Notes under the pieces: generated by a model
Databases searched by the model: none
The model's input: the letters and a program-made list of their open reading frames with translations, nothing else
What the model was told of the DNA's origin: nothing
Shown: positions 48,452-64,000 of the stretch, one piece after another
Position numbering within the stretch: position 1 is the first letter of the stretch
How the letters are laid out: each line of letters begins with the position of its first letter
Translations under genes and position numbers: made by a program
Sequence record: PV745554.1
DNA length: 64,000 nt
Direction: 5' to 3' (one strand)

Positions 48452-48729
48452 TCGCCGCCCACCAGCGCCCCTGCATGACGCCCGGCTGTCACTACCACAT
48501 CCATGACAGCCCCGGCCGCATCCAGATCACCATCGACCTGCCGGCCGGCGTGTCGCTGAAGACCAACCAGCACGAGGTGCTGCACCTGATGGCCGAGATG
48601 GGCGTCGCCGCTGCCCTGGCCAATGACGGACAGGTCGAGCGCATCGATCTGGCGAGCATGAAGCTCTACCAGGGCGCGTTCGAGAAGATGGCCGCCGAGC
48701 CCGATGACGACGCTGGCGGTGGTGCATGA
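48448..48729 (+). CDS. hypothetical protein
   Basis: ATGA overlap. Confidence 0.7.
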   Translation: MIAAHQRPCMTPGCHYHIHDSPGRIQITIDLPAGVSLKTNQHEVLHLMAEMGVAAALANDGQVERIDLASMKLYQGAFEKMAAEPDDDAGGGA

Positions 48730-49241
48730 AGATCATCGGCGTCGACCCCGGCATCTCCGGCGGCGTGGTGCTGCTCGACACCGAGGCCTGCTCGCTGACG
48801 GTCGCCGACATGCCCACCGAGCCTTCGACCAAGGGGCGCAAGCTCGCCTCCTCGGCCCTGCTCACCGTCTTCCTGCATGACGTCCAGCCTGATCACATCT
48901 TCCTCGAAGAGGTCGGGGTTCGTCCTGGCGAGGGCGCGGTCGGGGCCTTCTCGTTTGGTCGGGGCCTGGGGCGCCTGGAGGGCGTGGCGGCCGGCACCCG
49001 CACGGCGCTGACCACCGTCACCCCGCAGGAGTGGAAGCGCGTCACCAAGACGCCGGCCGACAAGAAGCGCGCCATCGCCCGCGCCTACCAACTCTTCCCC
49101 CGCTGCGTGAAGCTCTTCCAGGGGCCGCGCGGCGGTGAAAAGGACGGGCGCGCCGAAGCCGCCCTGATCGCCTTCTACGGGGCGATGAAGCTCGGCGTCG
49201 TCCCCAAAGCCCCCATCGAACCGGCGGAGTTCCCGGCTTGA
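48726..49241 (+). CDS. ruvC: RuvC-like Holliday junction resolvase
   Basis: IIGVDPG, IFLEEV, AFSFG, TPQEWK, DGRAEAALIA. Confidence 0.92.
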   Translation: MKIIGVDPGISGGVVLLDTEACSLTVADMPTEPSTKGRKLASSALLTVFLHDVQPDHIFLEEVGVRPGEGAVGAFSFGRGLGRLEGVAAGTRTALTTVTPQEWKRVTKTPADKKRAIARAYQLFPRCVKLFQGPRGGEKDGRAEAALIAFYGAMKLGVVPKAPIEPAEFPA

Positions 49242-49894
49242 CCCAGCCCCAGTACCTGACGCGCGCGCAGCTTCCCCGCCAGCGCCTCCCGCTTCGCCGG
49301 TTGTCGTCCGCCGATCGCTCCGGCCCGATCCCGACCTATGACGGCGACTACTCGTTCACCGCCGATCACCTGATCGACGATCCGCGCGAGCCCAACATCG
49401 TGCCGCTCGGCCTGCTGGACGCGCGCGGCGAGGAGTTGCTGAAGGTCCACATGCCCATCAAGGTCAAGATGGGTTTCGCCCTGCCGCCGTCCGATCGCGA
49501 CACCGCCGATGAGGTGGTCGCCTACGTGCCCGAGAGCCAGCTTATCGTCTCCGACATCGGCCTGGGCCAGGGCTACGTGACGCCCAAGGAAGCCGATGAG
49601 GCCGAAGACCTGGAAGCCGAAGATGACGAGGACGAGGAAGACGGCGAGACCACCGTGTCGATCCGCATCCCCGCCACCGAGGGCGTCATCGCCGCGCACG
49701 GCCTGATGCAGGCGGCGGCCGAGGCCGTCGCCGATCAGGTCACTGCCATGCACGTGGCCCTGACCCCCGAGGGCCTCATCGTCCTGCGCGGGCTAGCCTC
49801 GGCCCAGACCGACGCCTTGATCGCCTTCCTCCAGGCCGCTCACGCCGCGCGCCAGGAGGTGGAGAAGGAGCCGGCCGGTGGCGGACAAGCCTGA
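49238..49894 (+). CDS. hypothetical protein with acidic tract
   Basis: TTGA overlap after GGAG. Confidence 0.7.
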   Translation: MTQPQYLTRAQLPRQRLPLRRLSSADRSGPIPTYDGDYSFTADHLIDDPREPNIVPLGLLDARGEELLKVHMPIKVKMGFALPPSDRDTADEVVAYVPESQLIVSDIGLGQGYVTPKEADEAEDLEAEDDEDEEDGETTVSIRIPATEGVIAAHGLMQAAAEAVADQVTAMHVALTPEGLIVLRGLASAQTDALIAFLQAAHAARQEVEKEPAGGGQA

Positions 49895-50171
49895 CCTCAC
49901 CAGCCGCGTGGGCGCGGCGCGTCATCACCGCGCCCACGACGCCGCGCTCGACGCCTCGGTCAACGCCTTCCATGAGGCGGTGCGGATGTACACCGGCCTG
50001 ACCGCCCAGGTGGACCTCAAGAAGGTCCGCCCCGCCATCGTCGAGGACTACAGGCTGGGCGCGATCGCCGCGTTCGAAGCCCTGCTCGACAACATGAAGA
50101 ACGCCAGCGACGCCCTGGCCATCCTCAATGCAGTGCGCGCGGCCGAACCGCCCAAGCGCCCGGAACTCTAA
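49878..50171 (+). CDS. hypothetical protein
   Basis: GTG after AAGGAG. Confidence 0.7.
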   Translation: MADKPDLTSRVGAARHHRAHDAALDASVNAFHEAVRMYTGLTAQVDLKKVRPAIVEDYRLGAIAAFEALLDNMKNASDALAILNAVRAAEPPKRPEL

Positions 50172-50175
50172 ATCC

Positions 50176-50982
50176 ATGCCTCGCCTCGCCAACGACCGCC
50201 AAGAAACCTACGCCATCATGCGCGCCAAGGGCATGAAGCCTCCCCAGGCGGCGGCGGCGGCCGGCTATGTCGCGGGCTCGGCCGTCTACAGCGAACTGGA
50301 GAAGGACCCCGACATCAAGGCCCGCGCCCAGGAACTACTCGACGAGAACAACCTCAAGCGCGACCAGATGCGCACCGCCGCAACCGAGGCGGCCAAGGTC
50401 GTCGGGCAGATGAGCGGCGTGTCCAAGTCCTGGGTGCTCCAGAAGCTGGCCGAGAACGCCCAGATGGCGGCCCAGGATGGCGACTACAAGGAGAGCAACG
50501 CCGCCCTCAAGCTGATCGGCGATGAGTTCGGCATGTTCACCGGCGCGTCCGGCGAGGGTTCCGACCAGGGCGATGGCAAGCGCTCCTACGACCTCGACAC
50601 CATGAGCGCCCTGCTCGACAAGGCCGCCGAGACCCTGCCCGCGCCGGCGCCCAAGGTCGACCCCAACGTCGCCTTCGATCTGATCGCCGGCCAAGGCGAG
50701 GCCGCCAAGCGCGCCCGCCAGAGCCGTGCCTTCTCCGACGGCGAGGAAGCCGACATGGCCTTCACCGAGGCGGCCGACATCGACGCCGTGCCCGACGGCC
50801 CCTGGTCGGGTCCCGCGCCCGAGGACTTCTTCTCCGAGGATGAGCCCGAGGCGATGGTCGGCGAATCGTTCGAGAAGATCGACCCCCAGACCTCTCCCGA
50901 AGAGATCATGGCCCGCATCGCGCAGGCCGACCAATCCCCGACTTCCAGCGACGATCGGCCCAAGCGCCGGTCCTCGCGCTGA
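50176..50982 (+). CDS. terS: terminase small subunit (probable)
   Basis: N-terminal HTH with AAAAAGY motif; directly upstream of terL. Confidence 0.7.
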   Translation: MPRLANDRQETYAIMRAKGMKPPQAAAAAGYVAGSAVYSELEKDPDIKARAQELLDENNLKRDQMRTAATEAAKVVGQMSGVSKSWVLQKLAENAQMAAQDGDYKESNAALKLIGDEFGMFTGASGEGSDQGDGKRSYDLDTMSALLDKAAETLPAPAPKVDPNVAFDLIAGQGEAAKRARQSRAFSDGEEADMAFTEAADIDAVPDGPWSGPAPEDFFSEDEPEAMVGESFEKIDPQTSPEEIMARIAQADQSPTSSDDRPKRRSSR

Positions 50983-50995
50983 CCACTGAACGTCT

Positions 50996-52780
50996 ATGAC
51001 CTTCTACCCCATGGAGGACCGGGCCAAGGCCCGCTCCGTTGTCACCAACCTGCTGGACCTCCAGCGCGAAGCCGTCAAGGTCAGCCGCCAAGGTCTAATC
51101 CTACCGCCTGAGCGCAAGCAGTTGATCACCCAGTTGACCGAGACCGAGGATCACACCCGCTGGGTTGACCTGCTGGGTCAGTTCGCCGATCGCGTCCAGA
51201 CCGATCACCTGAGCCGTCTGAAGCCGATCGCCAAGGACGACTTCAACGCCTTCTGCGAGTACGTCAATCCCGACGAGCCGCCGGCCTCCAAGTGGCACGT
51301 CTTCCTGACCGGCACGCTCCAGGAGATCGAGAACAACCCCGAGCTTGAGCGCTTCGTGCTCAACTGCCCGCCGGGCCACGCCAAGCCGCTGGACGTCGAC
51401 ACCGAAGTGCTGATGGCTGATGGCGCCTGGAAGCGTCTGGGCGACATCCAGGTGGGCGACTACGTGGTGGGCGAGAGCGGCGCGCGCTGCAAGGTCACCG
51501 CCGTCCATGAGCAGGGCGACCTCGACACCCTGAAGATCACCACCGCCCACGGCCGGCAGATCATCGCCGCGCCCGACCACTCGTTCCGGGTCGGTGACGG
51601 CTGGAAGCCGGCCGGCAAGCTGCGTCCGGGTGACGCCCTGTCCGTCGTCGGCGCCGCCAACCTCAACTACGACGCCAGCGGCAAGTCGATCGACCACTTC
51701 GAGCTTGCCGCCTACCTCCAGGCCAAGGGCGGGCGCTCCTACTTCCACCGCGTCCACAAGAGCGGGCCGAAGACCTACCGCAACGTCTATCTGTGGACGT
51801 CCGACCACCGCGAGGCCAGCCAGATCAGCACGTGCCTCAAGCGCATGGGCGTGGCCTTCAAGGGGCGGCTGGCCAAGACCGAGAAGGTCTGGAAGATGCG
51901 CCTCTCGACCGAGTGGGGCGACGCCCTGGCCGAGGAGTACGGCCTGGACGCCAAGATCGACGCGCGTCGTGTTCCGGCCTTTGTCACGAAAGGCGACGAG
52001 GAGCAGATCGGCCGCTACCTGTCGACCCTGACCTCGCTGGCCGGCGAAGCTCCCGAGCGCTACACCATCCCGCGTCTGGTGCTCTACTTCAAGAACCCCG
52101 ACTTCGCCACCGACGTCCAGCGCCTGTTCGCCGCCGTCGGCGTCAACGCGCGCATCGAGCCGCGCAAGACCGGTCGCACCCGGCTGCACATCTCCGGCGC
52201 CGATCTCGAAGCCTACTTCGCCGCCGGCCTGACCTACACCGGCCCCAACGCCGACAAGCTGCCGGCCAAGCGCGCGGCGTTCCCGACCGCGCCCTCGACG
52301 CTGGCCGATCACGTCACCTGGATCGAGCCGCATGGGGTGCGCCCCTGCCGCTGCCTGACGGTCGAGAACGAGCACACCTTCATCGCCCAGGGCGTGGTGG
52401 TCCACAACTCGACCTACGCCTCGCGCCTGTTCGTGGCGTGGCGCCTGGGCCGCGATCCGCGCCAGAAGATCATCGGCGGCGGCCACTCCCAACGCTTCGT
52501 CGAAAACGAGTTCAGCGGCAAGATTCGCAACCTCGTGCGGACGCCCCAGTTCAAGGACGTCTTCCCCGGCGTGGTCATCGACCATGCCACCTCGGCTAAG
52601 GACATGTGGGCGATCGCCGGGCACGGCGGGCAGTATGCCGCCAAGGGCGCCGGTCAGGCCATCCACGGTCTGCGCGCCAACTTCGTCTGCGTCGATGACC
52701 CCTATCCGTCGATCCAGAAGGCCGAGAGCGGGGCCTACCGCGAGGAGCGCTCTGGGCGAAGTTTTGTGGGACTACTATGA
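50996..52780 (+). CDS. terL: terminase large subunit, ATPase part with intein (truncated by frameshift)
   Basis: Walker A PPGHAK|ST split by the intein; Walker B FVCVDDP; frame closes 12 codons after AYR. Confidence 0.9.
   Translation: MTFYPMEDRAKARSVVTNLLDLQREAVKVSRQGLILPPERKQLITQLTETEDHTRWVDLLGQFADRVQTDHLSRLKPIAKDDFNAFCEYVNPDEPPASKWHVFLTGTLQEIENNPELERFVLNCPPGHAKPLDVDTEVLMADGAWKRLGDIQVGDYVVGESGARCKVTAVHEQGDLDTLKITTAHGRQIIAAPDHSFRVGDGWKPAGKLRPGDALSVVGAANLNYDASGKSIDHFELAAYLQAKGGRSYFHRVHKSGPKTYRNVYLWTSDHREASQISTCLKRMGVAFKGRLAKTEKVWKMRLSTEWGDALAEEYGLDAKIDARRVPAFVTKGDEEQIGRYLSTLTSLAGEAPERYTIPRLVLYFKNPDFATDVQRLFAAVGVNARIEPRKTGRTRLHISGADLEAYFAAGLTYTGPNADKLPAKRAAFPTAPSTLADHVTWIEPHGVRPCRCLTVENEHTFIAQGVVVHNSTYASRLFVAWRLGRDPRQKIIGGGHSQRFVENEFSGKIRNLVRTPQFKDVFPGVVIDHATSAKDMWAIAGHGGQYAAKGAGQAIHGLRANFVCVDDPYPSIQKAESGAYREERSGRSFVGLL
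51386..52408 (+). mobile_element. intein (341 aa), class-3-like, with degenerate LAGLIDADG endonuclease
   Basis: Starts with Pro (PLDVDTEV), ends VVHN before Ser+1; block F CRCLTV; LAAYLQAKG and YLSTLTSLAG motifs. Confidence 0.9.
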
Positions 52781-53525
52781 CTTGCATTACTTCAAACGGA
52801 AGCGCTCCGAGTGGAAGTACCAAAGATTTACTTTGGTTTATCAACAACTTGCGGACGCCGCCTCGGACACGTCGATCGCGTCCAAGTTCCAGACCTACCA
52901 GCACCTGCCGCACCTGGACCCGAAGGTCCTCAAGGCGCGCATGGACGCGGGGCATGTTGACGATCGCGGCCGGCCGATCCCGGACCGCAAGGAGCACTTC
53001 CGCCGCATCGTGACCTCGGTCGACGCGGCCCAGAAAAAGGGCGCGCGCAACGACTACACGGTCGTCCAGGTGTGGGGCGAGACCCACGATCGCAAGCACT
53101 ACCTGATCTACCAGGAGCGCAAGAAGGTCGAGATCAACGACCTGATCGAGATGGTCGAGCGCATCTCCAAGCGCTTCGACGTCGACTCCATCCTGGTCGA
53201 GGACAAGGGCAACGGCACCGCCTACATCCAGGCGCGGGGCCAGACCGACAACCAGCGGCGGCTCGCGCCGGCCCCGATCGAGGCGATCCAGGTCCCCAGC
53301 ACCTACTCCAAGGAGTTCCGCTTCAACGAGGTCATCCCGATGATCGAGGCCCAGGAGGTCTACCTGCCCGACAAGGCGCCGTGGCTCGACCTCTTCATCC
53401 GCGAAGTCGGGCAGTTCCCCGAAGGCGCCCACGATGACCAAGTCGACGCCATGACGCAGTACCTCCGCTGGGCCAAGTCCAAGCGCACGCGGTTCGGCGC
53501 GCGCAAGGTCGGCTCGATGGGCTGA
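52749..53525 (+). CDS. terL: terminase large subunit, C-terminal RNase H-like nuclease part (in +1 frame)
   Basis: LGEVLW...YQQ...TSVDAAQK...NDYTV...ILVEDKGNG...HDDQVDAMTQ; no clear start of its own. Confidence 0.88.
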   Translation, partial: ALGEVLWDYYDLHYFKRKRSEWKYQRFTLVYQQLADAASDTSIASKFQTYQHLPHLDPKVLKARMDAGHVDDRGRPIPDRKEHFRRIVTSVDAAQKKGARNDYTVVQVWGETHDRKHYLIYQERKKVEINDLIEMVERISKRFDVDSILVEDKGNGTAYIQARGQTDNQRRLAPAPIEAIQVPSTYSKEFRFNEVIPMIEAQEVYLPDKAPWLDLFIREVGQFPEGAHDDQVDAMTQYLRWAKSKRTRFGARKVGSMG

Positions 53526-53551
53526 TTAACCATCTTCGTTCACCCTGTCCG

Positions 53552-53588
53552 GGCCTGTTAACCTTAACACAACGAGGGTTAACAGGCC
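53552..53588. repeat. inverted repeat with TTAA motifs downstream of terL
   Basis: GGCCTGTTAACC...GGTTAACAGGCC. Confidence 0.75.
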
Positions 53589-53716
53589 AGGGACCCATCG
53601 AAATTAACCCTTGGGGACCCAGGGAAATCATCAGCCGGGGACCCTGCCAAATTCAACGCTGGGGACCCACCAAAATCATCCCTCGGGGACCCTAGCAAAT
53701 CGTGGCTCGGGGACCC
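53589..53716 (+). repeat. six GGGGACCC motifs with exact 24-bp period
   Basis: Copies at 53589 (AGGGACCC), 53613, 53637, 53661, 53685, 53709, each followed by AAAT. Confidence 0.92.
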
Positions 53717-53737
53717 TGGCAAATCAAGGAGCCGGCG

Positions 53738-53971
53738 ATGGCCGAACTCATGAGCCTGCTGTTCAACCTCGCCCCGTTCCTGCTGCTGGCGATCGTCGTC
53801 TACCACGTCCTGGAGGCCTTCTGGGCGGTCTGCCTGTGGGTCTACGGCCTGCGTACCCTGTGGAAGCTCCACCGCGACGACCTGTGGGAGGCGCTGAGCC
53901 TGGAGCGCGCCCTGAGCCCGTTCACCCATCACCGGGACATGAACGGCAACCTGCCGCGCCCGCCGACCTGA
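53738..53971 (+). CDS. small membrane protein
   Basis: ATG after AAGGAG; hydrophobic N-terminal half. Confidence 0.7.
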   Translation: MAELMSLLFNLAPFLLLAIVVYHVLEAFWAVCLWVYGLRTLWKLHRDDLWEALSLERALSPFTHHRDMNGNLPRPPT

Positions 53972-54043
53972 TGCCCCAAGTCACGGACTGTAGGTTTCAT
54001 GACAAGGTGGATTATTCCACAACGAAATCAAAGGCTTATCGCC

Positions 54044-54292
54044 ATGTCATTCCGCGCGTTCCTCCACGACCTCGCCGTCCGTTTCGTAGTTTTGGGGTGG
54101 ATTTTTGCCCAAAAACCCCAGAAATGGGCTCCAAAAGGGCATAATTTTCAGCCCATCCCGCCGGCCCAGGTCGAGCGGCAGGACCTCCGGGGGCGCGTGC
54201 TCCTCCTGAGGAGCTTCGGCGTCCTCGCCGCCGCATGCACAACCATGGGCCTGTGTCAATACCTGCTCTGGCGCCGCGCGGCCATGTCATAG
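54044..54292 (+). CDS. possible small membrane protein
   Basis: Two hydrophobic stretches; atypical codons. Confidence 0.4.
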   Translation: MSFRAFLHDLAVRFVVLGWIFAQKPQKWAPKGHNFQPIPPAQVERQDLRGRVLLLRSFGVLAAACTTMGLCQYLLWRRAAMS

Positions 54293-54339
54293 ACTAGGGC
54301 TTTCGTGACGACCTCACGTTTACGTTACCGGATAACCCC

Positions 54340-54495
54340 TTGCCGCACCTGCTCTTCTGGCTCTCGGCCGCCTGCATCGCCCTGGCCTGGGTGATCTGGG
54401 CCGCCGCCCGGCTGATCCGCCGCGATCGCCAGCGCCGCGCCGCTGGAGCGCGCCTGGGCCGGCGCACCGCAGCCGCCCATATGCGCCATATCTGA
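54340..54495 (+). CDS. possible small membrane protein (absent from ORF track)
   Basis: TTG start; PHLLFWLSAACIALAWVIWAAA then Arg-rich tail. Confidence 0.5.
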   Translation: MPHLLFWLSAACIALAWVIWAAARLIRRDRQRRAAGARLGRRTAAAHMRHI

Positions 54496-54541
54496 GCCCT
54501 TATCGCCCTTTAGGGCTCAGATACGCGACATTACGGCCCTC

Positions 54542-54700
54542 TTGACGCCCCCGCGTTCTGAGGAACACGGGGGCGTTTTGACGTCGGCGCATTTCAGACT
54601 TGACGCGCGAGCATTTCAACGCCGGAGCGTTTTGACGCGGGCGCATTTTCGATTCAACGCGCGAGCGTTTTGACGTCCGAACGTTTTTCAACTTGACGTC
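54542..54700 (+). repeat. degenerate array of TTGACG/TCAACG-containing units
   Basis: TTGACG at 54542, 54578, 54600, 54632, 54670, 54693; units end GC(A/G)TTT. Confidence 0.75.
54545..54580 (+). terminator. terminator-like hairpin
   Basis: ACGCCCCCG..GTTC-TGAG-GAAC..CGGGGGCGT then TTT. Confidence 0.55.
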
Positions 54701-54725
54701 GTTTCATTTACCACGAGCGCCTTAG

Positions 54726-54952
54726 GGTTAACCGCCGAGCCTGGGAATGGTTAAGGCCCGTTAACCATGTTTGTTAACCCTCAGGCCGTTAACCTATCAC
54801 CCGTTAAGGTTAACGCACCCCGGCCATTAACCCTGAGCGTGTTAAGGTTAACACCCCGTTAAGGTTAACAATTAAGGTTAACGCCCCCGGTAACCCTGCC
54901 GCCGTTAAGGTTAACAAACATGGTTAACGGGCCAGACCGGCGTTAACCTTAA
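54726..54952. repeat. dense TTAA cluster
   Basis: 19 TTAA in about 225 bp; TTAAGGTTAA five times plus one reverse copy; one perfect TTAA-N7-TTAA at 54848. Confidence 0.85.
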
Positions 54953-55011
54953 CGGCCAGAGCCCAGGCCCTACCGGGTATGACCTGCCGGCCATACCCGG
55001 TAGGGCGCGCC

Positions 55012-55269
55012 TCACGCGTCCGCGTCGGGCGACGCCGCCGCGCCGTATTCGTGGTCATTCCAGAGTATGCCCAGAATTTCGTCAGGCCCGAACGAAGGAA
55101 GCAAGGTTTGCAGGGCGTCGTATGTCTCGCGAAAGGCGCTCGCGTCGTCGTCCTGCATCCAAACCGACTCCTTGCCGGCCTTGTCGCGGAACGTGTACGC
55201 CGCGCCGTTCCCGTAGCTGTCGAGGGCGAAGCGTTCGCCCTCAGAAATGCGAATCGGTCCTGAATACAT
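55012..55269 (-). CDS. hypothetical protein
   Basis: ATG after GGAG on minus strand (MYSGPIRISEG). Confidence 0.7.
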   Translation of the reverse strand: MYSGPIRISEGERFALDSYGNGAAYTFRDKAGKESVWMQDDDASAFRETYDALQTLLPSFGPDEILGILWNDHEYGAAASPDADA

Positions 55270-55326
55270 GGGGCGATCTCCAAGGGCGCGGGGTGCGCCG
55301 ACCCGTGCAATCTGGACCCCCAATTC

Positions 55327-55392
55327 TTAACAAAACGTAAACGCCAGAGCCTTTTCCGTGTTTACGTTTTGTTAAGACTTTGCCGCTAGTGT
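55327..55392. promoter_or_regulatory. divergent pair of CtrA-box promoters
   Basis: TTAA-CAAAACG-TAAA (55327) and TTTA-CGTTTTG-TTAA (55361), then GCTAGTGT. Confidence 0.8.
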
Positions 55393-55432
55393 TCCTTGTG
55401 CCGGCGCATCCCGCGCCCTTGGAGCCTGGATC

Positions 55433-55726
55433 ATGTCCAACCGTTACGACGTTGAATATACAGACACTTTCGCAGGCGAGGCGAATTATTCTGGGGTCCG
55501 CCGCGCGGCCGTGACCATGCCAGAGCTAACCCATTATGGGTACGATGGCGGAACAAACTACGCCAAGGCGAACAAGGTTTTTAACCGCGAACTCATGAAG
55601 CGCGCCAAGGCCGCCATGGGTCTAACGGGCGTTCGCGGCGTTTCGGCCGCGCACGGTGACGGGCTGGAATTTCGGCCCTATAGGTCCGCGACGGTGCTTT
55701 TCGTGACCTATCGCGACGCCGACTAG
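55433..55726 (+). CDS. hypothetical phage protein
   Basis: EYTDTFAGEANYS...RAKAAMGLTG motif. Confidence 0.8.
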   Translation: MSNRYDVEYTDTFAGEANYSGVRRAAVTMPELTHYGYDGGTNYAKANKVFNRELMKRAKAAMGLTGVRGVSAAHGDGLEFRPYRSATVLFVTYRDAD

Positions 55727-55887
55727 GCAAGCCGCCCGGCGCCCTCCAGAGGACGCTGGGCGAACGCTTGCCCAGCGCGTTAACCATGTTTTTGAAAAGC
55801 GCCCAGCCCCGCCGTAGCGCCCCTACGGTTCGAAGAGCCCGGCCCTGCCGGTCCTGCCGGCTACAGGTCCAATCTAGCGGCCAATCC

Positions 55888-55963
55888 TTAACAAAACGTA
55901 AACGCCAGAATCTTTTTCGGGGGCTTTCGCGTTTACGTTTTGTTAAGAAATAGGGTCTAGTGT
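55888..55963. promoter_or_regulatory. second divergent pair of CtrA-box promoters
   Basis: Near copy of 55327-55392; boxes at 55888 and 55932. Confidence 0.8.
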
Positions 55964-56011
55964 CCCTCTTGTCGGGGCCACCCCCGGCGCTCTTTGACAT
56001 TGTGAGGCAAC

Positions 56012-56200
56012 ATGATTCCCTCTGAAGTTCTGAATCCGCGCGAGCACTGGACTCCCGTCGCCTCGCGCGAGGAAGCCGAAAAGATCGCCGCGCGCTGCAC
56101 CGAAGGCGACCCCGTCGGCCGCTACTACGTCGAGGAAAAGGGCGCCGGCTACGCTGTCGCCTATGACGACGAGGCGGGCGAATTCGTCGCCTACCTGTAA
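56012..56200 (+). CDS. small hypothetical protein
   Basis: ATG after GAGG. Confidence 0.75.
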   Translation: MIPSEVLNPREHWTPVASREEAEKIAARCTEGDPVGRYYVEEKGAGYAVAYDDEAGEFVAYL

Positions 56201-56228
56201 ACCTTTTGTTAAGACCTGACCTCTAAAC
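56198..56228 (+). promoter_or_regulatory. CtrA-box promoter
   Basis: TAAA-CCTTTTG-TTAA-N10-CTAAAC. Confidence 0.8.
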
Positions 56229-56262
56229 CGGGGTCAGGTTCAACCCCTGGAGGCCCTGCCCC

Positions 56263-56649
56263 ATGCCCAACCCCGGACTCTTTCGCGCCATGGCCAAAGC
56301 CGCCAAGCCGGTGATTAAGGCCTATCACGCCGACTTCGAAATTCACGACGCCAAGGTGATTCACGGCCTAAAGGACGGCGATGTCATCTTGTGGGCGCCG
56401 GACGCGCACGGAACGACTCTTATCGTCCTGGCGCGGGCTGGACGGCCCAACCATCGCGCCGCCGAACACTTCGAAGCCGCCAAGGCCCGCAACGCCCCCG
56501 CGTGGTTTGTCGCGTCGCTGTACCATGACGGCGAGTCGGGTCACTGGAGCCTTTCGCCGGCGCCGGACGCGCCCGAAATCGTCGCCCGCTTCGCCGAACA
56601 AGCCGCCCGCGACACCGCCCCGGACCCGGTGCGCGAGCTACACCTTTAA
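56263..56649 (+). CDS. hypothetical protein
   Basis: ATG after GGAGG. Confidence 0.8.
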   Translation: MPNPGLFRAMAKAAKPVIKAYHADFEIHDAKVIHGLKDGDVILWAPDAHGTTLIVLARAGRPNHRAAEHFEAAKARNAPAWFVASLYHDGESGHWSLSPAPDAPEIVARFAEQAARDTAPDPVRELHL

Positions 56650-56676
56650 CCTTTTGTTAAGACTTGACCTCTAAAC
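56646..56676 (+). promoter_or_regulatory. CtrA-box promoter
   Basis: Perfect TTAA-CCTTTTG-TTAA-N10-CTAAAC. Confidence 0.88.
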
Positions 56677-56711
56677 AGGGGTCAAGTCCAACCCCCTGGA
56701 GGCCCTGCCCC

Positions 56712-57251
56712 ATGTCCGTTATCGAAACCGCCAACCTCTCGCGCGGCCGTGTTCTCACCGTCGAAATCGACGACTGCGCCCAAGAGCCCTACGCCGACGA
56801 CAAGGGCGTGCGAATCGTCGTCCTGCATCGCCATTGGACGAACCCCGCCGCCGGCCTGCTGGACTCGGTCGAGGACGTTCAAGCCTTCGAGGCGCAGAAC
56901 GCCGCGCCCGACTCTGAATGGGCGATCTTTGAGCTATGGGTGATGGACCATAGCGGCCGGACCTTCAAGGCCGGCGCGCTGGGCGCCGGAAACCCGTTCG
57001 GCGCCGGACCCTACGCCCAATGGGATAGCGGCCGGGTCGGAGTCATCGCCCTGGCGCGCGCCGAGTGGCCCGCCGCCGACCTCAAGACCGCCCAAGGCGT
57101 CGCCGACACCTACGGCGCATGGGCCGAAGGCGAGGTTTACCAATTCGTCATTTCGAACCGCCGGGGCGACGTGCTCGACTCGTGCGGCGGGTTCTACAGC
57201 GTCGCCGAAGCCCTGGCCGCCGGCCGCGACGCCGCCAAGGTGAAAGCGTGA
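56712..57251 (+). CDS. hypothetical phage/plasmid protein
   Basis: WDSGRVG...W..GEVY...DSCGGFY motif. Confidence 0.8.
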   Translation: MSVIETANLSRGRVLTVEIDDCAQEPYADDKGVRIVVLHRHWTNPAAGLLDSVEDVQAFEAQNAAPDSEWAIFELWVMDHSGRTFKAGALGAGNPFGAGPYAQWDSGRVGVIALARAEWPAADLKTAQGVADTYGAWAEGEVYQFVISNRRGDVLDSCGGFYSVAEALAAGRDAAKVKA

Positions 57252-57442
57252 GAGTCGCCCGCGAAAGCTTCGCCGTGTTCTGGACCCGCCCCGGCTGGCG
57301 CGTCCAGTTTCACGCCGACATGAAACGGGCGCTGTACCCGACCGCCAAGGCCGCCGCCGACGCCTTCGCCGCCATGTTCCCGGCTGATCAGGTCAAGAGC
57401 GTGCGCGACGGCTCCGGCCGCTTCCTGGCCTTCAAGCGCTAG
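57248..57442 (+). CDS. small hypothetical protein
   Basis: GTGA overlap. Confidence 0.65.
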   Translation: MRVARESFAVFWTRPGWRVQFHADMKRALYPTAKAAADAFAAMFPADQVKSVRDGSGRFLAFKR

Positions 57443-57447
57443 ACCAG

Positions 57448-57482
57448 ACGCCCCGGAAAACTTTTCCGGGGCGTTTACTTTT
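57448..57482 (+). terminator. Rho-independent terminator
   Basis: ACGCCCCGGAAAA-C-TTTTCCGGGGCGT then TTACTTTTT. Confidence 0.75.
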
Positions 57483-57505
57483 TGTTAAGGAATGGCGTCT
57501 AGTGT
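57474..57505 (+). promoter_or_regulatory. CtrA-box promoter
   Basis: TTTA-CTTTTTG-TTAA-N10-CTAGTGT. Confidence 0.8.
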
Positions 57506-57550
57506 CCCTCTTGCCGCCGGGCAATCCCGCCCGGCCTTGGAGTTCTTCCC

Positions 57551-58069
57551 ATGCCGGAATTTGTCCTAGATACGTCGGGCCAAGTCGCCCCGCCCGCCGC
57601 CGCCAAGCTTTGGCCGCACCCCCTGGCCTGGAATCAGTTGAGCGATTTTGCTCAAGGCTACATCGAGGCCCTGTTTTTCACCGAGTCGTCGCCGGCCTAT
57701 GACCGCGCCGAATGGTTCGGCGCCGAGTGTCAAGAGGCCCTGGAGGAAGGCACGGCGGACGGGAACATTCCGGGCGATGTCGGATTCGCCGACCTCGCGC
57801 CCGCCACCCTGGCGCGCATCGTCGCCGATTGCGCCGACTTCCAACGCCAGCACGCCGACGCCCTGGCCAAGGCCTATGACCACGGCGGCGCGTCGGGCGA
57901 CTATGACGACGCCGCCGCCGGCCGTGATTATTGGTATACCCGCAACGGCCATGGCGTCGGGTTCTGGGATCGCGGACTCGGCGCGATCGGTGAGGCCCTG
58001 AGCAAGGCCGCCCGCTACAGCGAGCAAAACGCCTCTTTCGAGGATGACGAAAAGGTCTATCTCTCTTAA
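57551..58069 (+). CDS. hypothetical phage protein
   Basis: GRDYWYTRNGHGVGFWDR motif. Confidence 0.85.
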   Translation: MPEFVLDTSGQVAPPAAAKLWPHPLAWNQLSDFAQGYIEALFFTESSPAYDRAEWFGAECQEALEEGTADGNIPGDVGFADLAPATLARIVADCADFQRQHADALAKAYDHGGASGDYDDAAAGRDYWYTRNGHGVGFWDRGLGAIGEALSKAARYSEQNASFEDDEKVYLS

Positions 58070-58097
58070 CCTTTTGTTAAGACTTGGCCTCTAGGGT
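58066..58097 (+). promoter_or_regulatory. CtrA-box promoter
   Basis: Perfect TTAA-CCTTTTG-TTAA-N10-CTAGGGT. Confidence 0.88.
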
Positions 58098-58161
58098 CAG
58101 GTTGTCCCGGCGCCGGGGCTGGAACCCCCGGCGCGTCCATTCCGTGAAAGGAATCCATACC

Positions 58162-58908
58162 GTGTCTTTTGGTCAATTCTCCGCCGACGCCCGCGCCCCG
58201 CTGTCGAAATCCGCCATGCTGGACGCCCTCCCCGCCGCGCGCCGTGACGCTCTGGTCAAGTCCAGCAAGCCGGCGCGAAACACGCTCGATTACACAACCG
58301 CCGACGGCGTGCGCCGCGTGCGCTTGCATGACACCGACGTTTTGACGTTCCACGTTAACGGCGCCGTCGAGATCAACACGGGCGGCTGGAATACCCTAAC
58401 CACGCGCGACCGAATCAACACGTTCGCCCCGCCTCACGTGCGCGTCTACAGCGACAAGGGCCGCGCCGTGGTTCGCGCCTTGCCGGCCGGTGACGGCGCC
58501 GTCACGTGGTCCAGCCCCGCCGCGTCCAAGCCGTTCGCCAAGCGCGCCACCGTTCACCCGGACGGCCGAATCGAAGTGGACGCGACCGTCAAAGAACTGG
58601 AGGCGATTCCTAGCCTCATCCGCCGCTATCTGGAGGCCTTCAAGGCCGGTTTCCCGTTCAACTCGTCGGGTGACCCGTGGATGACGCCCGGCGCCCTTGT
58701 CGCCCCGGAAACCGCCCTTGACTGGCTGGGCGCCGACAGCGGCAAGCCGTACCTGTTCGACTCGATCCTGTTTCACGCCCATGTCGCGGCCGGCCTGACC
58801 GAAGAGGGCGCGGCGTTCTACATGCGCGAGGCCGCCCGGCGCGGCGTCGACAAATTCAATCTCGGCCGCATCCGGCGTTACCTCAAGCGTTGCCTTCGCG
58901 AAGCCTAG
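58162..58908 (+). CDS. hypothetical phage protein
   Basis: GTG after AAGGA; LHDTDV...INTGGWNTLTTRDRIN motif. Confidence 0.8.
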   Translation: MSFGQFSADARAPLSKSAMLDALPAARRDALVKSSKPARNTLDYTTADGVRRVRLHDTDVLTFHVNGAVEINTGGWNTLTTRDRINTFAPPHVRVYSDKGRAVVRALPAGDGAVTWSSPAASKPFAKRATVHPDGRIEVDATVKELEAIPSLIRRYLEAFKAGFPFNSSGDPWMTPGALVAPETALDWLGADSGKPYLFDSILFHAHVAAGLTEEGAAFYMREAARRGVDKFNLGRIRRYLKRCLREA

Positions 58909-58917
58909 ACCCTGCCC

Positions 58918-58950
58918 GGCCGCGCCGCCCTGGCGCGGCCTTTCTTTTCC
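58918..58950 (+). terminator. Rho-independent terminator
   Basis: GGCCGCGCC-GCCCT-GGCGCGGCC-TTTCTTTT. Confidence 0.8.
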
Positions 58951-58959
58951 GTGTACGCG

Positions 58960-58992
58960 TTAACTTCTTGTTAAGACTTTACGCGCTAATGT
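58960..58992 (+). promoter_or_regulatory. CtrA-box promoter
   Basis: Perfect TTAA-CTTCTTG-TTAA-N11-CTAATGT. Confidence 0.88.
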
Positions 58993-59044
58993 CCCCTTGC
59001 CGCCGGGCAATCCCGCCCCGCCGCCTCTCAAAGGATCGCCACCC

Positions 59045-59665
59045 ATGGCCCGCCTGATCAAAGCCAAGTCCACCGCCGAACAAGCCGAAGCCCTGGCCAG
59101 CCTGCAAAAAATGCTCAAGCCGGGCGACACGGTTTATCCCGTGCTGCGCCACGTCTCGACCTCCGGCATGATGCGAGTCATTGACCTGATTATCCCGGTC
59201 ACGGTCGAGACGTCGCAAACCCTGCCGGCCGGCGCGCGCGGCTTCAAGATCGGCGTTCAAGCCTATGCGACCCCGCCGGAGCGCAACGCCCCCCGCGCCT
59301 TCTCAACCGGCGCCGTGACGGCTTTCGACGCCGACACCGTGACCATTGCCTATCAGGCCACCGCCGACGGCCGGGGCGAGGCGGAATCGGTGACGTGGCC
59401 CCGTGGTCAGGTCAAGTTCTACGCCAAGAGCAAGCGCCCTGGCGTCCGCTCGATCGGCTGGCTTGCCGCGAAGGCTATGGGCGACACTTTCGACGCCGAC
59501 CGCCAAGGAATCAAGGTCGGCGGGTGCGGTATGGATATGGGCTTTCACCTCGTTTACAGCCTGGGCCGCACGCTCTGGCCAAAGGGAACGAAAAAGCCGC
59601 ACGGCTCGCGCAACGGCGAGCCCGACCGCGACGGCGGTTATGCGCTGAAACATTCCTGGCTTTAA
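59045..59665 (+). CDS. hypothetical phage protein with internal insertion
   Basis: LRHVSTSGMMRVI...GCGMDMGFHLVYSL motifs. Confidence 0.85.
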   Translation: MARLIKAKSTAEQAEALASLQKMLKPGDTVYPVLRHVSTSGMMRVIDLIIPVTVETSQTLPAGARGFKIGVQAYATPPERNAPRAFSTGAVTAFDADTVTIAYQATADGRGEAESVTWPRGQVKFYAKSKRPGVRSIGWLAAKAMGDTFDADRQGIKVGGCGMDMGFHLVYSLGRTLWPKGTKKPHGSRNGEPDRDGGYALKHSWL

Positions 59666-59694
59666 CTTTTTGTTAAGAGTTTAGCCGCTAATGT
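59662..59694 (+). promoter_or_regulatory. CtrA-box promoter
   Basis: Perfect TTAA-CTTTTTG-TTAA-N11-CTAATGT. Confidence 0.88.
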
Positions 59695-59743
59695 CTCCTT
59701 GCGGCCGGGCAATCCCGCCCGGCCGCACCCGGAACCAAAGCCC

Positions 59744-60016
59744 ATGACCCGCGCTCAAGTCCTCGCCGAAATCGCCGCCCTCGAAGGCGTCCAAGCCCGT
59801 TTCGTCACCGAAACCAAGGAATTCCGCGTCACCCTGACTTTTGGCCCGCTTCCCATGGGGCGCGGCTCGCAAGCCTGGATGAACGCCCGCCGGGAAGCCG
59901 TCGCCTACTACACCGAAGACAAGGCCGACGCCCTGGCCACCGCCCGCGACATGTCGGCCCGTTGGGTCGCCATGACCCCGGCGCAACGTGATCACCTGTA
60001 CCGCAACGCCGCGTAA
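59744..60016 (+). CDS. hypothetical protein
   Basis: ATG downstream of the promoter and leader hairpin. Confidence 0.75.
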   Translation: MTRAQVLAEIAALEGVQARFVTETKEFRVTLTFGPLPMGRGSQAWMNARREAVAYYTEDKADALATARDMSARWVAMTPAQRDHLYRNAA

Positions 60017-60044
60017 CCCTTCGTTAAGACCCGGCCGCTAGAGT
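60013..60044 (+). promoter_or_regulatory. CtrA-box promoter
   Basis: GTAA-CCCTTCG-TTAA-N10-CTAGAGT. Confidence 0.75.
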
Positions 60045-60080
60045 GGCCGGGTCATCAACCCCCCGCAAGGATCGCCCGAC

Positions 60081-60359
60081 ATGCGCAAGCCCCTGACCCA
60101 AGAGCAAAAGGCCCGCCGCCGCGCGCAACGCCGCGCCGCCCGCCTGACCTGGAGCGACGAACGCCGCGCGGCCGAATACGCCCGCCAATCGCGCTTTTTC
60201 CTGATGATCGCCGAACGCGCCCAAGTCGCGGGCGACCGCACCGAAGCCGCCCGCCTCGCCACCGTCGCGCAACGCAAGGTGACCAACTGGCGCATGGCGG
60301 AGGCGTGCGCCCGCATCAACGCCCTTTCCGTCCACGCCTGGGCCGCTGTCGCGGCCTAA
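60081..60359 (+). CDS. basic helical hypothetical protein
   Basis: ATG after AAGGA. Confidence 0.75.
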   Translation: MRKPLTQEQKARRRAQRRAARLTWSDERRAAEYARQSRFFLMIAERAQVAGDRTEAARLATVAQRKVTNWRMAEACARINALSVHAWAAVAA

Positions 60360-60376
60360 CTGGAGAACCCCGCCCC

Positions 60377-60700
60377 ATGCCCCCGATGACTCACCCTCAC
60401 GCCCTGGCCTTGATCGCGCTCGCCGAAAAGGTCCTGCCCCTGACCAAGCTGCACCCGCTGGACCAAAGGGCCGCCGCTGTCGATCTTATCGGCGACCTCT
60501 ACAGCCTCGCCGACTCCATCGACGCCACCGCCGGCCACTTGGTCGCCGCTGTCAACGGCGCCTTGCGCGACGGCTGCGAGGGTTACGCGCCCAAGAGCCG
60601 CGCCGCCGCCGCTGTCGCCACCGTCCGCGCCGACGAACTGCGCTCCGCCCTGGAGGCGTACACCGAAGCCGCCGCCCTGGCCCTGCCGAAGGTTGCCTAA
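60377..60700 (+). CDS. hypothetical protein
   Basis: ATG after GGAG. Confidence 0.7.
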   Translation: MPPMTHPHALALIALAEKVLPLTKLHPLDQRAAAVDLIGDLYSLADSIDATAGHLVAAVNGALRDGCEGYAPKSRAAAAVATVRADELRSALEAYTEAAALALPKVA

Positions 60701-60701
60701 C

Positions 60702-60845
60702 GTGACCGCCCTGCAATGCGCCGGCTTCGCCGCTCAACGTCGCGGCGTCAAATGGTGGAATAACCCGCATCCGGCCGGCTCTCCCGCCGCCTATCAATGG
60801 GATCAAGGCCACACTTTCGCCCGCCGCTCGATCACCGCCGCCTAG
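60702..60845 (+). CDS. Rmf/CrpP-fold-like miniprotein (absent from ORF track)
   Basis: 47 aa: GFAAQRRGVKWWNNPHPAGSPAAYQWDQGH fits G..A...G.....NP.......W..G. Confidence 0.65.
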   Translation: MTALQCAGFAAQRRGVKWWNNPHPAGSPAAYQWDQGHTFARRSITAA

Positions 60846-60858
60846 GAAAGGCCCCGAC

Positions 60859-61440
60859 ATGTCGCAACGCTACCGCCTCGCGCCCGCCGCCCGCGTCTCC
60901 AAGGCGCTTTCGGACCTGCTTTATGCGGCGTCGGAAGTCGTCGCCACGGCGGCGCAATATGAGACGACGCCCGCCGGTCAAACCAAGCTCGCCAAGATGC
61001 GCGGCGACCTGATCACCGAAAGCGCCGGCGCCCTCGTGCGCAAGCCGCCTAGCGCCGTCCTCGCAACCCTCGTTTGGGTTGTCGAAATGGCGCAAGCCCG
61101 CGCCACGGATGCGGATTTCAATTCCGCCCAAGAGGGGCTGGACGAACACGACGCTCTAGCGTTCGTCGCCGATTGGCTGGAAGCCGAAGGCGTGGACGTG
61201 ACCGTCATTCGCAACGCCGCGCCCTCGGCCGAAGCCTTGGCCGAACTCGTCGCCCGCCGCGACGCCGAACAAGAGGCGCTGGACGCCCTGGAAGCCGTCC
61301 AGAGCCCCGAAGACCCCGCCGACGTGATCACCGACGCCTTGCGGGGCTATCTGGGCGCCACGCTGGCGGAAAACCACGCCGACGACGTGCTAGACGCCCT
61401 CACGCGCGCCGGCTTCCAAATCACCCGCAAGGAGGCCTAA
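60859..61440 (+). CDS. hypothetical protein
   Basis: ATG after AGGAAAGG. Confidence 0.8.
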   Translation: MSQRYRLAPAARVSKALSDLLYAASEVVATAAQYETTPAGQTKLAKMRGDLITESAGALVRKPPSAVLATLVWVVEMAQARATDADFNSAQEGLDEHDALAFVADWLEAEGVDVTVIRNAAPSAEALAELVARRDAEQEALDALEAVQSPEDPADVITDALRGYLGATLAENHADDVLDALTRAGFQITRKEA

Positions 61441-61445
61441 AGCCC

Positions 61446-62273
61446 ATGACCAAAGCCCGCCACGCCTTCGAGGCCGTCCGCGTCGAATCGGCCGGGGAGT
61501 CGATCCTTGATCGCTTCACCGTGACCAAGAAACGCACCGCCGAACAAGCCTATGACGCGGCCGAAGCCCTTTGCGAGGCCGCCCGCGCCCTCGCGCCGGG
61601 TCAAGCCCATTTCGTCCGCGAAGTAAACGCGCCGGGCGAAGAGACGCCCGCCCAAGCCCTGGACCTCGCCAGCGTCTCGACGGCCGACCTCATCGCCGAA
61701 CTCTACCGCCGCCCGGTCGCCGTCTGTGTGTTCGAAGGCGTGGACGTGCTCGCCGAAGCGGGCGGCGCCTTCGATGACGCCGACGACGCCGCCCAATGGC
61801 TGGCCAGCAAGTCCAGCTATATCGGCGACGCGATGAGCGGCGCCGGCTGGGACTCGGTGCGCTATCACCTGACCGCCGACGGCCGCGCCACCGACGAGGG
61901 CGACGACGAGGAAGAGCCCGCCGACGCCCTCCCCGTCGCCGTGACCCTGGAGCAAGGCGACGCCGTCCGCGTGGTCGGGCGCTTCGCCACCGTGGGCGAA
62001 GCCGTCGATTTCCTGGCCTCTCCGATCCGCGATCAAGACGCCCTCGCCGCCGGCCGCTACGGGATCGACGCGCCGCACGGCGTGGCCAGCGACGCGGACG
62101 CCGTGACCCTGGCGAACAAGCTGGGCTTTCAAGTATTCCGCTCCATGGGGTCGGTCTACTACGCCCCGCCCGGCGTGGCGGTTTCCGGCAACGCCGACGG
62201 CCGGGGCTGGAAAGGCGGTTTCGACGACATCGCCGCCGCCGCCCTCGCCGCCCTGGCCACCGTCGACCCCTAG
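61446..62273 (+). CDS. acidic hypothetical protein
   Basis: ATG after AGGAGG. Confidence 0.75.
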   Translation: MTKARHAFEAVRVESAGESILDRFTVTKKRTAEQAYDAAEALCEAARALAPGQAHFVREVNAPGEETPAQALDLASVSTADLIAELYRRPVAVCVFEGVDVLAEAGGAFDDADDAAQWLASKSSYIGDAMSGAGWDSVRYHLTADGRATDEGDDEEEPADALPVAVTLEQGDAVRVVGRFATVGEAVDFLASPIRDQDALAAGRYGIDAPHGVASDADAVTLANKLGFQVFRSMGSVYYAPPGVAVSGNADGRGWKGGFDDIAAAALAALATVDP

Positions 62274-62462
62274 CCGCCTAAGTCATCATTCCTACCGTCT
62301 ATGACATGTCACGGGCTGAATACTTGGCCCGTGACGACTTCCCCTAGTAAAGCTCACGCCTGTTTTCGTGACATAGCGCAAGGAACTGAAATCGTTGGAA
62401 AAACTCCTAGAGGGTCACAAAGTTCTGGTTTGGCTGCTGCTGCTGGCGTGCCTCTGGCGCTT

Positions 62463-62495
62463 TTAACCCTTTGTTAAGACTTTACCCGCTAGGGT
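62463..62495 (+). promoter_or_regulatory. CtrA-box promoter
   Basis: Perfect TTAA-CCCTTTG-TTAA-N11-CTAGGGT. Confidence 0.88.
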
Positions 62496-62550
62496 GACTT
62501 TGCGGCCGGGCAATCCCGCCCCGCCGCCTTCCTTCTCTGGAGCCGCTACC

Positions 62551-62991
62551 ATGCAAACCGCTTCCGTGATTCTCCCCGCCCAAACCCTGGCCGGCGCCGA
62601 CCTTGGCCCCGTGCTGATGGTCTTCGCCCTGGAACTGTCGCAGCACTTCGGCGACGTCGCCCAAGCCCCGACCGTCGAGCGCTGGACCGATGAGGCGACG
62701 GGCGCCGAATTCGTCGCCGACTGTGTGGCGTTCACGGTGTCGGCGGACTGGACCGCCAAGGGCGGACGCATGGCGCGCCGCCTGGAGAACATGGCCGCCC
62801 GCTACGCCGCCCCGTGCGAGGCCCCGGCCCTGACCGTCCAGCACGCCGACGGCTCAACCGTCTACGTCGCCGCCCTGGAGGCCCTGGCGCGCCCTGCCCC
62901 GGTGCAAGGCCCCTCGCGCATCGCAGACCCGGCTTTCCTGCCCCGCCAGCGTGAGGACAAGGCCGCCCGCTTCGAGCGCCTGACCGCCTAG
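62551..62991 (+). CDS. hypothetical protein
   Basis: ATG after GGAG. Confidence 0.8.
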   Translation: MQTASVILPAQTLAGADLGPVLMVFALELSQHFGDVAQAPTVERWTDEATGAEFVADCVAFTVSADWTAKGGRMARRLENMAARYAAPCEAPALTVQHADGSTVYVAALEALARPAPVQGPSRIADPAFLPRQREDKAARFERLTA

Positions 62992-63015
62992 GCCCTGGCC
63001 TAGCCTCTCCCCTTG

Positions 63016-63048
63016 GCGCACCGCCTCGCAAGCGGTGCGCTTTTCTTT
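63016..63048 (+). terminator. Rho-independent terminator
   Basis: GCGCACCGC-CTCGCAA-GCGGTGCGC-TTTTCTTT. Confidence 0.85.
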
Positions 63049-63053
63049 GCGTA

Positions 63054-63086
63054 TTAACTTGTTGTTAAGAGTTTAGCTGATAGTGT
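63054..63086 (+). promoter_or_regulatory. CtrA-box promoter
   Basis: Perfect TTAA-CTTGTTG-TTAA-N11-ATAGTGT. Confidence 0.85.
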
Positions 63087-63136
63087 CTCCTTGTTGGCGG
63101 CGCATCCCGCGCCGCTCCTCTCTTGGATCGCTCGAC

Positions 63137-63529: not shown

Positions 63530-63561
63530 TAACCTTTTGTTAAGACCCCCTGGCCTATAGT
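63529..63561 (+). promoter_or_regulatory. CtrA-box promoter
   Basis: GTAA-CCTTTTG-TTAA-N11-CTATAGT. Confidence 0.8.
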
Positions 63562-63587
63562 CAGGGGGTCGCAAGGAGACACCCGAC

Positions 63588-63779: not shown

Positions 63780-64000
63780 CCAGACCCCCGGCGCCCCCGG
63801 TCGCCTCGCGGTAGGGCTGTCCCATATTGAGACGGCCCTACCGGGGTAGTGTTTCTTTTTGGGACGAGGGACCCAAAGGCCCCCTACGTTAACCATTTTT
63901 GGCGGCGCCCCCCGGCGCCTCAGGATAGCATTGAACTTTTCGGTTGACATAATCAGACCCTCAGGCGAAGAAGGGCGCGTTCAGGCCGAGCGGCGCCCCC

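Follow-up and report, generated by a model that had tools for sequence, protein, structure and literature searches.

A conserved GGGACCC repeat array downstream of terL as a candidate small-terminase recognition element in phiCbK-like phages

Just after the terminase gene terL of Caulobacter phage BL64, the word GGGACCC is repeated at strictly regular intervals, and another copy stands by itself close to the end of the record. What is this array for, and does it take part in choosing the ends of a genome that carries long direct terminal repeats? To our knowledge, no recognition site has been defined for this terminase class. The window analysed here comprises the last 64,000 bp of the BL64 record PV745554.1 (224,634 bp; Poindextervirus rogue, phiCbK-like), so that a window coordinate equals the record coordinate minus 160,634; the unit genome is 213,380 bp, and the array, its flanking elements, the repeat boundaries and the TerS gene are given on the + strand. 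Judging from sequence comparisons, the array may be a pac- or cosB-like recognition array for the small terminase subunit (TerS), with the single copy marking the terminating cut. We hold this packaging reading tentatively and weigh it below against regulatory, replicative and DNA entry functions.

The array (53589..53724) is made up of six (A/G)GGGACCC-N4-AAAT units with an exact period of 24 bp; GGGACCC-N4-AAAT starts at 53590, 53614, 53638, 53662, 53686, and 53710, and TRF calls the array at 53590-53727. The first copy reads AGGGACCC and the remaining five GGGGACCC. The regular spacing, the AAAT after each copy and the inverted repeat in front, all listed in the preliminary description, were found in the sequence as described. 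Only 0.01 occurrences of GGGACCC-N4-AAAT were expected from 100 dinucleotide-preserving shuffles, against the six observed. The slightly relaxed pattern GGGACCC-N4-AAWT also occurs six times in the 213,380-bp unit genome, every time inside the array; hence, the extended motif is no general promoter or operator word, which argues for the packaging reading. A genome-wide depletion of the GGGACCC heptamer vanished under Markov models of order 3 or higher.

The array and the lone copy had been proposed as the two boundaries of a phiCbK-type terminal repeat beginning just after the terminase genes. BL64 is indeed phiCbK-like and carries a direct terminal repeat of about 11 kb beside these genes (PMC3556154). 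The termini of phiCbK were mapped by ligation of oligonucleotides to virion DNA together with a two-fold coverage step, which placed the left terminus within codon 652 of terL and the right terminus in a non-coding gap about 10.3 kb downstream, and the boundary sequences of Rogue, Swift, Karma, and Magneto match those of phiCbK, as judged by coverage (Gill 2012, PMC3556154). In BL64, the right-hand copy of the direct terminal repeat begins at 52747, where the record's repeat_region starts with GCGCTCTGGGCGAAG..., and the Rogue and phiCbK records open at base 1 with this very sequence. The repeat therefore starts inside terL and not after it, and since the left terminus lies 843 bp upstream of the first GGGACCC copy, the array is internal to the repeat rather than its edge.

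At the other end the proposal fared better. The phiCbK and Rogue records both end with ...GGGACCCAAAGGCCCCCTACGTTAACCATTTTTGGCGGCGCCCCC, that is ...GAGGGACCCAAAGGCCCCCTACGTTAACCATTTTTGGCGGCGCCCCC, and alignment of the junction places the inferred right genome terminus of BL64, a cut between two bases, at 63912..63913. The lone motif at 63867, which lies 10,278 bp after the first array copy as had been stated, ends 38 bp before this homologous site and can thus be retained as a mark of the right boundary. The 10,278-bp spacing is not the length of the repeat, which is 11,166 bp by homology. The array lies beside the terminase genes, 843 bp from the left cut, and is unique in the genome, as might be asked of a terminase site; as for a position at a terminus, the lone motif has it (by homology with phiCbK and Rogue) and the array does not. 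The distance to the left cut, 843 bp in the phiCbK type and about 350 to 415 bp in the Colossus type, is both variable and large compared with cosB and argues against packaging, as does the lack of any GGGACCC near the phiCbK-type left cut. A cut-site motif shared by the left and right junctions was not found either, the best local match (TTTTGTGGGAC versus TTTTTGGGAC) being at chance level.

These comparisons also exposed several peculiarities of the BL64 record. It continues for 88 bp after the homologous site, to a right end at 64000 behind a second GCGGCGCCCCC, so that the repeat is annotated with 11,254 bp (window 52747-64000) versus the 11,166 bp given above. The two copies are annotated as identical, yet they differ by a 2-bp indel (window 62294), the left copy having 11,252 bp and the right one 11,254 bp. 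In terL (50996-53525), 203 bp are absent compared to Rogue, and the gap ends exactly where the right repeat copy starts (between 52746 and 52747). The reading frame is consequently broken into ORFs in different frames (50996-52780 and 52584-53525), terL is unannotated and the locus tags 336 and 337 are missing. This looks like an artefact of assembly or joining of the record and not like a real deletion in an essential gene.

The lone copy is part of a 55-bp block at the right terminus (63866..63920), which contains the lone AGGGACCC (63867-63874), TTAACCAT (63889-63896) and a GGCGCC-CCCC-GGCGCC stretch, with AGGGACCCAAAGG...GTTAAC spanning 63867-63893. Every Shapirovirus and Poindextervirus record has this block without a single difference (100% identity), and in each of them it closes the left repeat copy; its flanks diverge in phiCbK. 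By itself the lone heptamer is not significant (14 GGGACCC in the window versus 17.6 expected), and its significance comes from this conservation only. Blocks related to it were found in CcrPW, Colossus, Bajun, J4, and the metagenome contig L053, and the conservation of array and block together in other genera supports the earlier suggestion that the two belong together.

In several of these phages, the position of the lone copy relative to the ends could be compared directly. GGGACCC is followed by the right terminus after 37 to 38 bp in phiCbK (mapped), Rogue (coverage), and CcrPW and J4 (annotated), a point for the packaging reading, although the termini of the Ely-lab records (CcrPW, J4, and BL64) may have been set by homology with phiCbK and hence would not be independent. 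The CcrPW record ends with ...GGGACCCAAGGCCACCCTCCCTCGTTAACCATTTTTCCGGGGCGCC, and the annotated repeat end of J4 falls 37 bp after GGGACCCAAGGCC. Lone copies of the GGGACCCAAGG...TTAACCA type are also present 11 to 16 kb downstream in Bajun (GGGACCCAAGGCCCCCCCTTTGTTAACCACGTTTTGGGCGCCCCC, 15.9 kb after terL) and in contig L053 (GGGACCCAAGGGGGTATACCCTTTGTTAACCA, 11.2 kb after the array), whose TerL is 34% identical, and favor packaging as well. The same holds for two left ends: the annotated left boundary of CcrPW, 36 bp after terL, coincides exactly with the start of a further lone GGGGACCCTTCGAAAT, and in Colossus a GGGGACCCTTCGAAAT motif precedes the left end defined by coverage by about 52 bp. 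The right side of Colossus speaks against packaging, since the annotated drop in coverage (16589-16764) lies about 430 to 600 bp before the conserved right-end block at 17194.

A further copy, GGGGACCC, lies outside the window at positions 11334-11341 of the BL64 record (L002), about 170 bp past the right terminus, and is kept in BL64, Rogue, and phiCbK. It lies between a terminator-like hairpin, which it directly follows, and a promoter-like TTGACAGAACCAGAC...GCTAAGT further downstream, and Colossus has a counterpart at 17312. The right cut is thus flanked on both sides by copies of the core.

In an alignment of BL64, Rogue, CcrBL10, phiCbK, Karma, and Brevundimonas phage Bajun, the cores are invariant in all six phages (42/42 columns), as opposed to 39/94 of the spacer and other columns, a point for the packaging reading. 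Arrays with the same core follow terL in CcrPW and Colossus (six copies each, with periods of 22 to 25), J4 (four), Domovoi (nine), and Bajun (six). An exact-pattern scan of IMG/VR added, among others, Sphingobium phage Lacusarx as well as metagenomic contigs with a TerL identity to Rogue of only 34 to 39%. Altogether, 18 distinct phages and contigs have 3 to 9 copies with periods of 22 to 30 bp, throughout on the terL strand and with the consensus unit C-R-GGGACCC-T-N3-R-A-W-T-T, 3 to 2473 bp after the terL stop (in contig L018, the array overlaps the stop by 11 bp). Since periods that are not multiples of three (as 24 is) occur among the relatives and the spacers drift, the array must be non-coding. 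At the sequence level, the GGGACCC array is therefore conserved across Dolichocephalovirinae and metagenomic relatives with a TerL only 34% identical.

The partner that the array keeps is terL. Among 21 arrays with this signature in IMG/VR, 17 have a terL homolog (34 to 100% identity) upstream on the same strand, and a further two stand at the left end of records that begin with the repeat (19/21 terL-linked). The array keeps the orientation of terL even in Colossus and CcrPW, where the next annotated genes come only after about 1.5 kb and are encoded on the opposite strand. This linkage to terL, rather than to any downstream gene, is a further point for packaging. The element is not universal in the wider TerL clade, since Ruegeria phage V10, with a C-terminal TerL match 44% identical, has neither this array nor any other tandem repeat after terL. 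Many other GGGACCC arrays in IMG/VR (perfect 25- to 26-bp tandem repeats and G-rich repeats) were discarded as unrelated.

The candidate reader of the array is TerS, encoded at 50176..50982 and annotated as such, which matches the PHROG TerS family phrog_11494 (2.7e-141) and, at the profile level, the small-terminase structures 21di (nine chains) and SF6 3zqp, as well as the DNA-binding domains of SF6 (4zc3 and 2cmp). The part of TerS that is conserved across genera is the N-terminal region of about 120 residues (MPRLxNxRHExF ... AAGY ... ARIxEL), which contains a helix-turn-helix and is kept even in contigs L018 and L051 and where TerS is only 26% identical. An SF6-type TerS with a conserved N-terminal DNA-binding region is a point for the packaging reading, and this conserved part would fit a conserved DNA target. 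The co-conservation of TerS and the motif could, however, merely reflect common descent. Upstream of TerS (48726-50171), the packaging module runs in the order RuvC-like Holliday junction resolvase, phrog_12078 and phrog_12356 proteins, and then TerS and TerL, an order common to phiCbK, CcrPW, and Bajun. The small phrog_12078 and phrog_12356 proteins, to which no function is assigned, are alternative candidates for reading the array.

Under the packaging reading, a ring-forming TerS (the SF6 TerS homolog with its N-terminal helix-turn-helix) would bind the array, and a TerS-TerL holoenzyme would assemble there on replicated DNA. TerL would then make a sequence-specific left cut 843 bp upstream of the array, within its own gene, and packaging would proceed rightwards, through the array and the whole genome. 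On the second pass through the repeat of about 11 kb, the single GGGACCC in the invariant 55-bp block would position the terminating cut 38 bp downstream. The role of TerS as reader, the direction of packaging and the assignment of initiation and termination to the two elements are inferred.

The immediate surroundings of the array suggest another function. It sits in the 212 bp that separate the terL stop (53523-53525) from the start codon of BL64_338 (ATG, 53738) and begins 64 bp after the stop. The TGA is directly followed by TTAACCAT (53526-53533; stop and word together 53523..53533), which, like the TTAACCAT at 63889-63896, resembles a CtrA half-site (Laub et al. 2002). The TTAACCA after terL is kept in BL64, Rogue, CcrBL10, phiCbK, Karma, and Bajun. 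Next comes a 12-bp inverted repeat (53552..53588) formed by GGCCTGTTAACC (53552-53563) and GGTTAACAGGCC (53577-53588). Its hairpin (14 pairs, dG -31.5 kcal/mol, z = -4.3) has no T-run after it, and the TTAACC and GGTTAAC of its arms are kept as far as Bajun. On the other side, the array abuts the Shine-Dalgarno AAGGAG and ATG (53726..53740) of BL64_338, the first gene of the repeat, which codes for a predicted membrane protein of 77 aa matching phrog_7368 (function not assigned).

The array could accordingly be an operator, at which a phage or host protein binds six sites cooperatively and controls transcription into the gene block of the terminal repeat, either by preventing or anti-terminating read-through out of terL or as an on/off switch for the first repeat genes. 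In BL64, Rogue, phiCbK, and Bajun, 1 to 40 bp separate the end of the array from the Shine-Dalgarno and start codon of the first repeat gene, and a stable hairpin precedes the array; the operator-like abutment on a gene start in BL64, phiCbK, and Bajun counts against packaging. The repeat is moreover a regulatory hub, in which CtrA boxes are enriched, bind CtrA and regulate the repeat genes, according to Mascolo 2022 (PMC9437464). Consistent with that study, the seven TTAA-N7-TTAA in the window are restricted to the repeat (zero elsewhere), and the enrichment described includes the TTAAC words that adjoin the array and those at the right end. The core of the array is not itself a CtrA box, and the TTAA pairs of the hairpin are spaced by N2, N11, and N17, versus N7 in the CtrA box TTAA-N7-TTAA.

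Transcription across the locus was approached through Logan contigs from four phiCbK-like RNA-seq runs, which share 68% of sampled 31-letter words of the Karma locus (phiCbK itself shares 61%). The contigs run unbroken from the 3' end of terL through the hairpin and the array into the first repeat genes of Karma (L093), which puts the array in continuous coverage of RNA libraries, in favor of an operator and against packaging; such contigs show gap-free coverage, without local depth or transcript ends, and carry-over of DNA is possible. Within terL of Karma, at L093 4863-4892, 177 bp before the repeat boundary, the contigs of three of the four runs are all interrupted at precisely the same position, and a short side contig continues into a poly-G tail. 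Many library molecules thus seem to end there, which an RNA end, a processing site or an artefact of the library could explain.

However, we found no sigma-70/73-like promoter (-35 and -10 hexamers with proper spacing) in 53300-55500, the array itself containing no TTGAC, and the motif is present at no other promoter in the 213 kb. There was likewise no match to Rfam covariance models (E <= 0.1, 52500-64000) and no DnaA box in or beside the array, and the absence of promoter, Rfam family and DnaA box at this place argues for the packaging reading. The array also lies 1 to 2.5 kb from any same-strand gene start in Colossus, CcrPW, and contigs L025 and L051, where the linkage to terL and its orientation persist, and an operator would leave the heptamer at the right terminus unexplained. 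An operator seems to us unlikely.

Other regulatory repeats abound in the region of the array, namely a TTGACG array and a cluster of CtrA boxes, which is a point against the packaging reading. The first of them is a second non-coding array (window 54543-54700), in which TTGACG(N)..GCATTTC recurs about eight times with a period of some 16 to 54 bp. In Domovoi (about 16 copies), Bajun, J4, and CcrPW, the GGGACCC array is followed by equivalent TTTGACGC arrays, which resemble a -35 element. The second, a stretch of 230 bp (window 54727-54955) packed with about 20 words of the TTAAC type made of (G)TTAAGGTTAAC and GTTAACC units, is probably the high-density CtrA-box region of Mascolo et al. 2022. 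Similar TTAAC clusters follow the arrays in Domovoi, Bajun, and J4.

Another candidate function is that of an element for replication or maintenance, that is, iterons of a phage origin or a centromere-like site by which the circularised genome is kept as an episomal pseudolysogen. Three to nine direct repeats at a period of 22 to 26 bp have the classic geometry of iterons and centromeres, the crowding of CtrA boxes some 1 kb further downstream is reminiscent of the Caulobacter origin, and AT-rich stretches flank the array of CcrPW. Episomal persistence has been shown by Mohammadi & Ely 2025 (PMC12195562), who postulate an origin recognised by the host. Nevertheless, no DnaA boxes or clusters of them were found nearby, and the annotation shows neither an initiator gene nor one of the ParA/ParB type in the vicinity of the array. 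GC skew, which we tried as an origin locator and rejected, follows gene orientation only and gives no origin signal. Neither the strict linkage to terL nor the copy at the right terminus is explained by a replication function, and we regard it as quite unlikely.

The long repeat itself brings phage T5 to mind. Both phages have a long direct terminal repeat (about 10 kb), and both carry conserved non-coding arrays of direct repeats near one of its boundaries that are better conserved than the genes of the repeat. The T5 arrays (untranslated repeats including nine DRD) lie at the inner boundary of the 10-kb repeat and are associated with the injection stop (bioRxiv 10.1101/866236). If the right end of BL64 entered the cell first, the GGGACCC array would be at the inner edge of the first 11 kb or so to enter, where it might pause DNA entry until the repeat genes are expressed, and phiCbK-like phages encode "DNA transfer proteins" similar to A1/A2 of T5 (PMC3556154). 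On the other hand, two-step entry has not been reported for phiCbK-like phages, and the A1-like genes are outside the repeat and hence could not be expressed from the first-step fragment. The arrays of T5 also differ from the one described here in their unrelated sequence, in containing DnaA boxes and in lying at the opposite boundary (that of the inner left copy), and the role proposed for them is in DNA entry and not in packaging. An entry pause of this kind appears highly improbable to us.

For the packaging reading, precedents of repeated TerS sites exist in the R sites of lambda cosB, the hexamer repeats of P1 pac and the pacL and pacR boxes of SPP1. In lambda, the repeated TerS sites (R1-R3 in cosB, bound by gpNu1) lie on the first-packaged side of the cut beside the terminase genes, and a separate element (cosQ) serves the terminating cut, similarly to what is proposed for the array and the lone copy. 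However, cosB is about 50 to 170 bp from cosN, where 12-nt cohesive ends are made, whereas the array is 0.35 to 0.85 kb from the left cut; the ends of BL64 are an 11-kb direct repeat, the six units are direct repeats in the same orientation, and TerS binding is predicted. The likeness to the pac sites of SPP1 and SF6 (pacL, pacC, and pacR; TerS G1P) lies in the homology of BL64 TerS to SF6 G1P (3zqp; 2cmp, 4zc3) and in short repeated boxes both around and away from the cut. Those phages package by headful with permuted ends and have pac in or upstream of terS, while phages of the BL64 type have fixed ends, a long repeat and the array downstream of terL. P1 pac, with seven hexamers flanking the cut, is a similar cluster of short identical words, but its hexamers all fall within 162 bp around the cut and are regulated by Dam methylation; the cut of BL64 is distant and the array contains no methylation motif, the sole GANTC in 53400-55000 being at 54651.

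The GGGACCC element appears to be undescribed. The phiCbK-type repeats (Gill 2012) and their CtrA-box enrichment (Mascolo 2022) were described in the same genomes, and the boundaries used here are taken from these. Gill 2012 (PMC3556154) contains no passage on tandem or direct repeats after terL, and the array is not mentioned in the passages of Mascolo 2022 (PMC9437464) that were consulted. Full-text literature searches for the motif returned unrelated primer matches only.

A more far-reaching idea, which we judge rather improbable, is that GGGACCC is the "address word" of an uncharacterised way of packaging genomes with long terminal repeats, in which the array would license initiation and single copies about 38 to 52 bp before a cut would set the cleavage by TerL, or else that the array and the adjacent CtrA-box cluster together form a cis element for episomal replication or persistence in step with the Caulobacter cell cycle. 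If the address word were real, the position of the lone copy would encode the length of the terminal repeat.

For existing records, the comparison flags annotation problems (the right end of BL64 and the terL bases missing at the join), and the element supplies a signature from which the right repeat end can be predicted in the unmapped Bajun, Domovoi, and Lacusarx and in metagenomic contigs. More broadly, the locus bears on how phages with long exact repeats (of the T5, SPO1, and phiCbK types) choose two cut sites and duplicate about 10 kb. For this question it provides a compact cis element (a 136-bp array and a 55-bp end block), a candidate reader in TerS and a comparative series that extends across genera and uncultured relatives.
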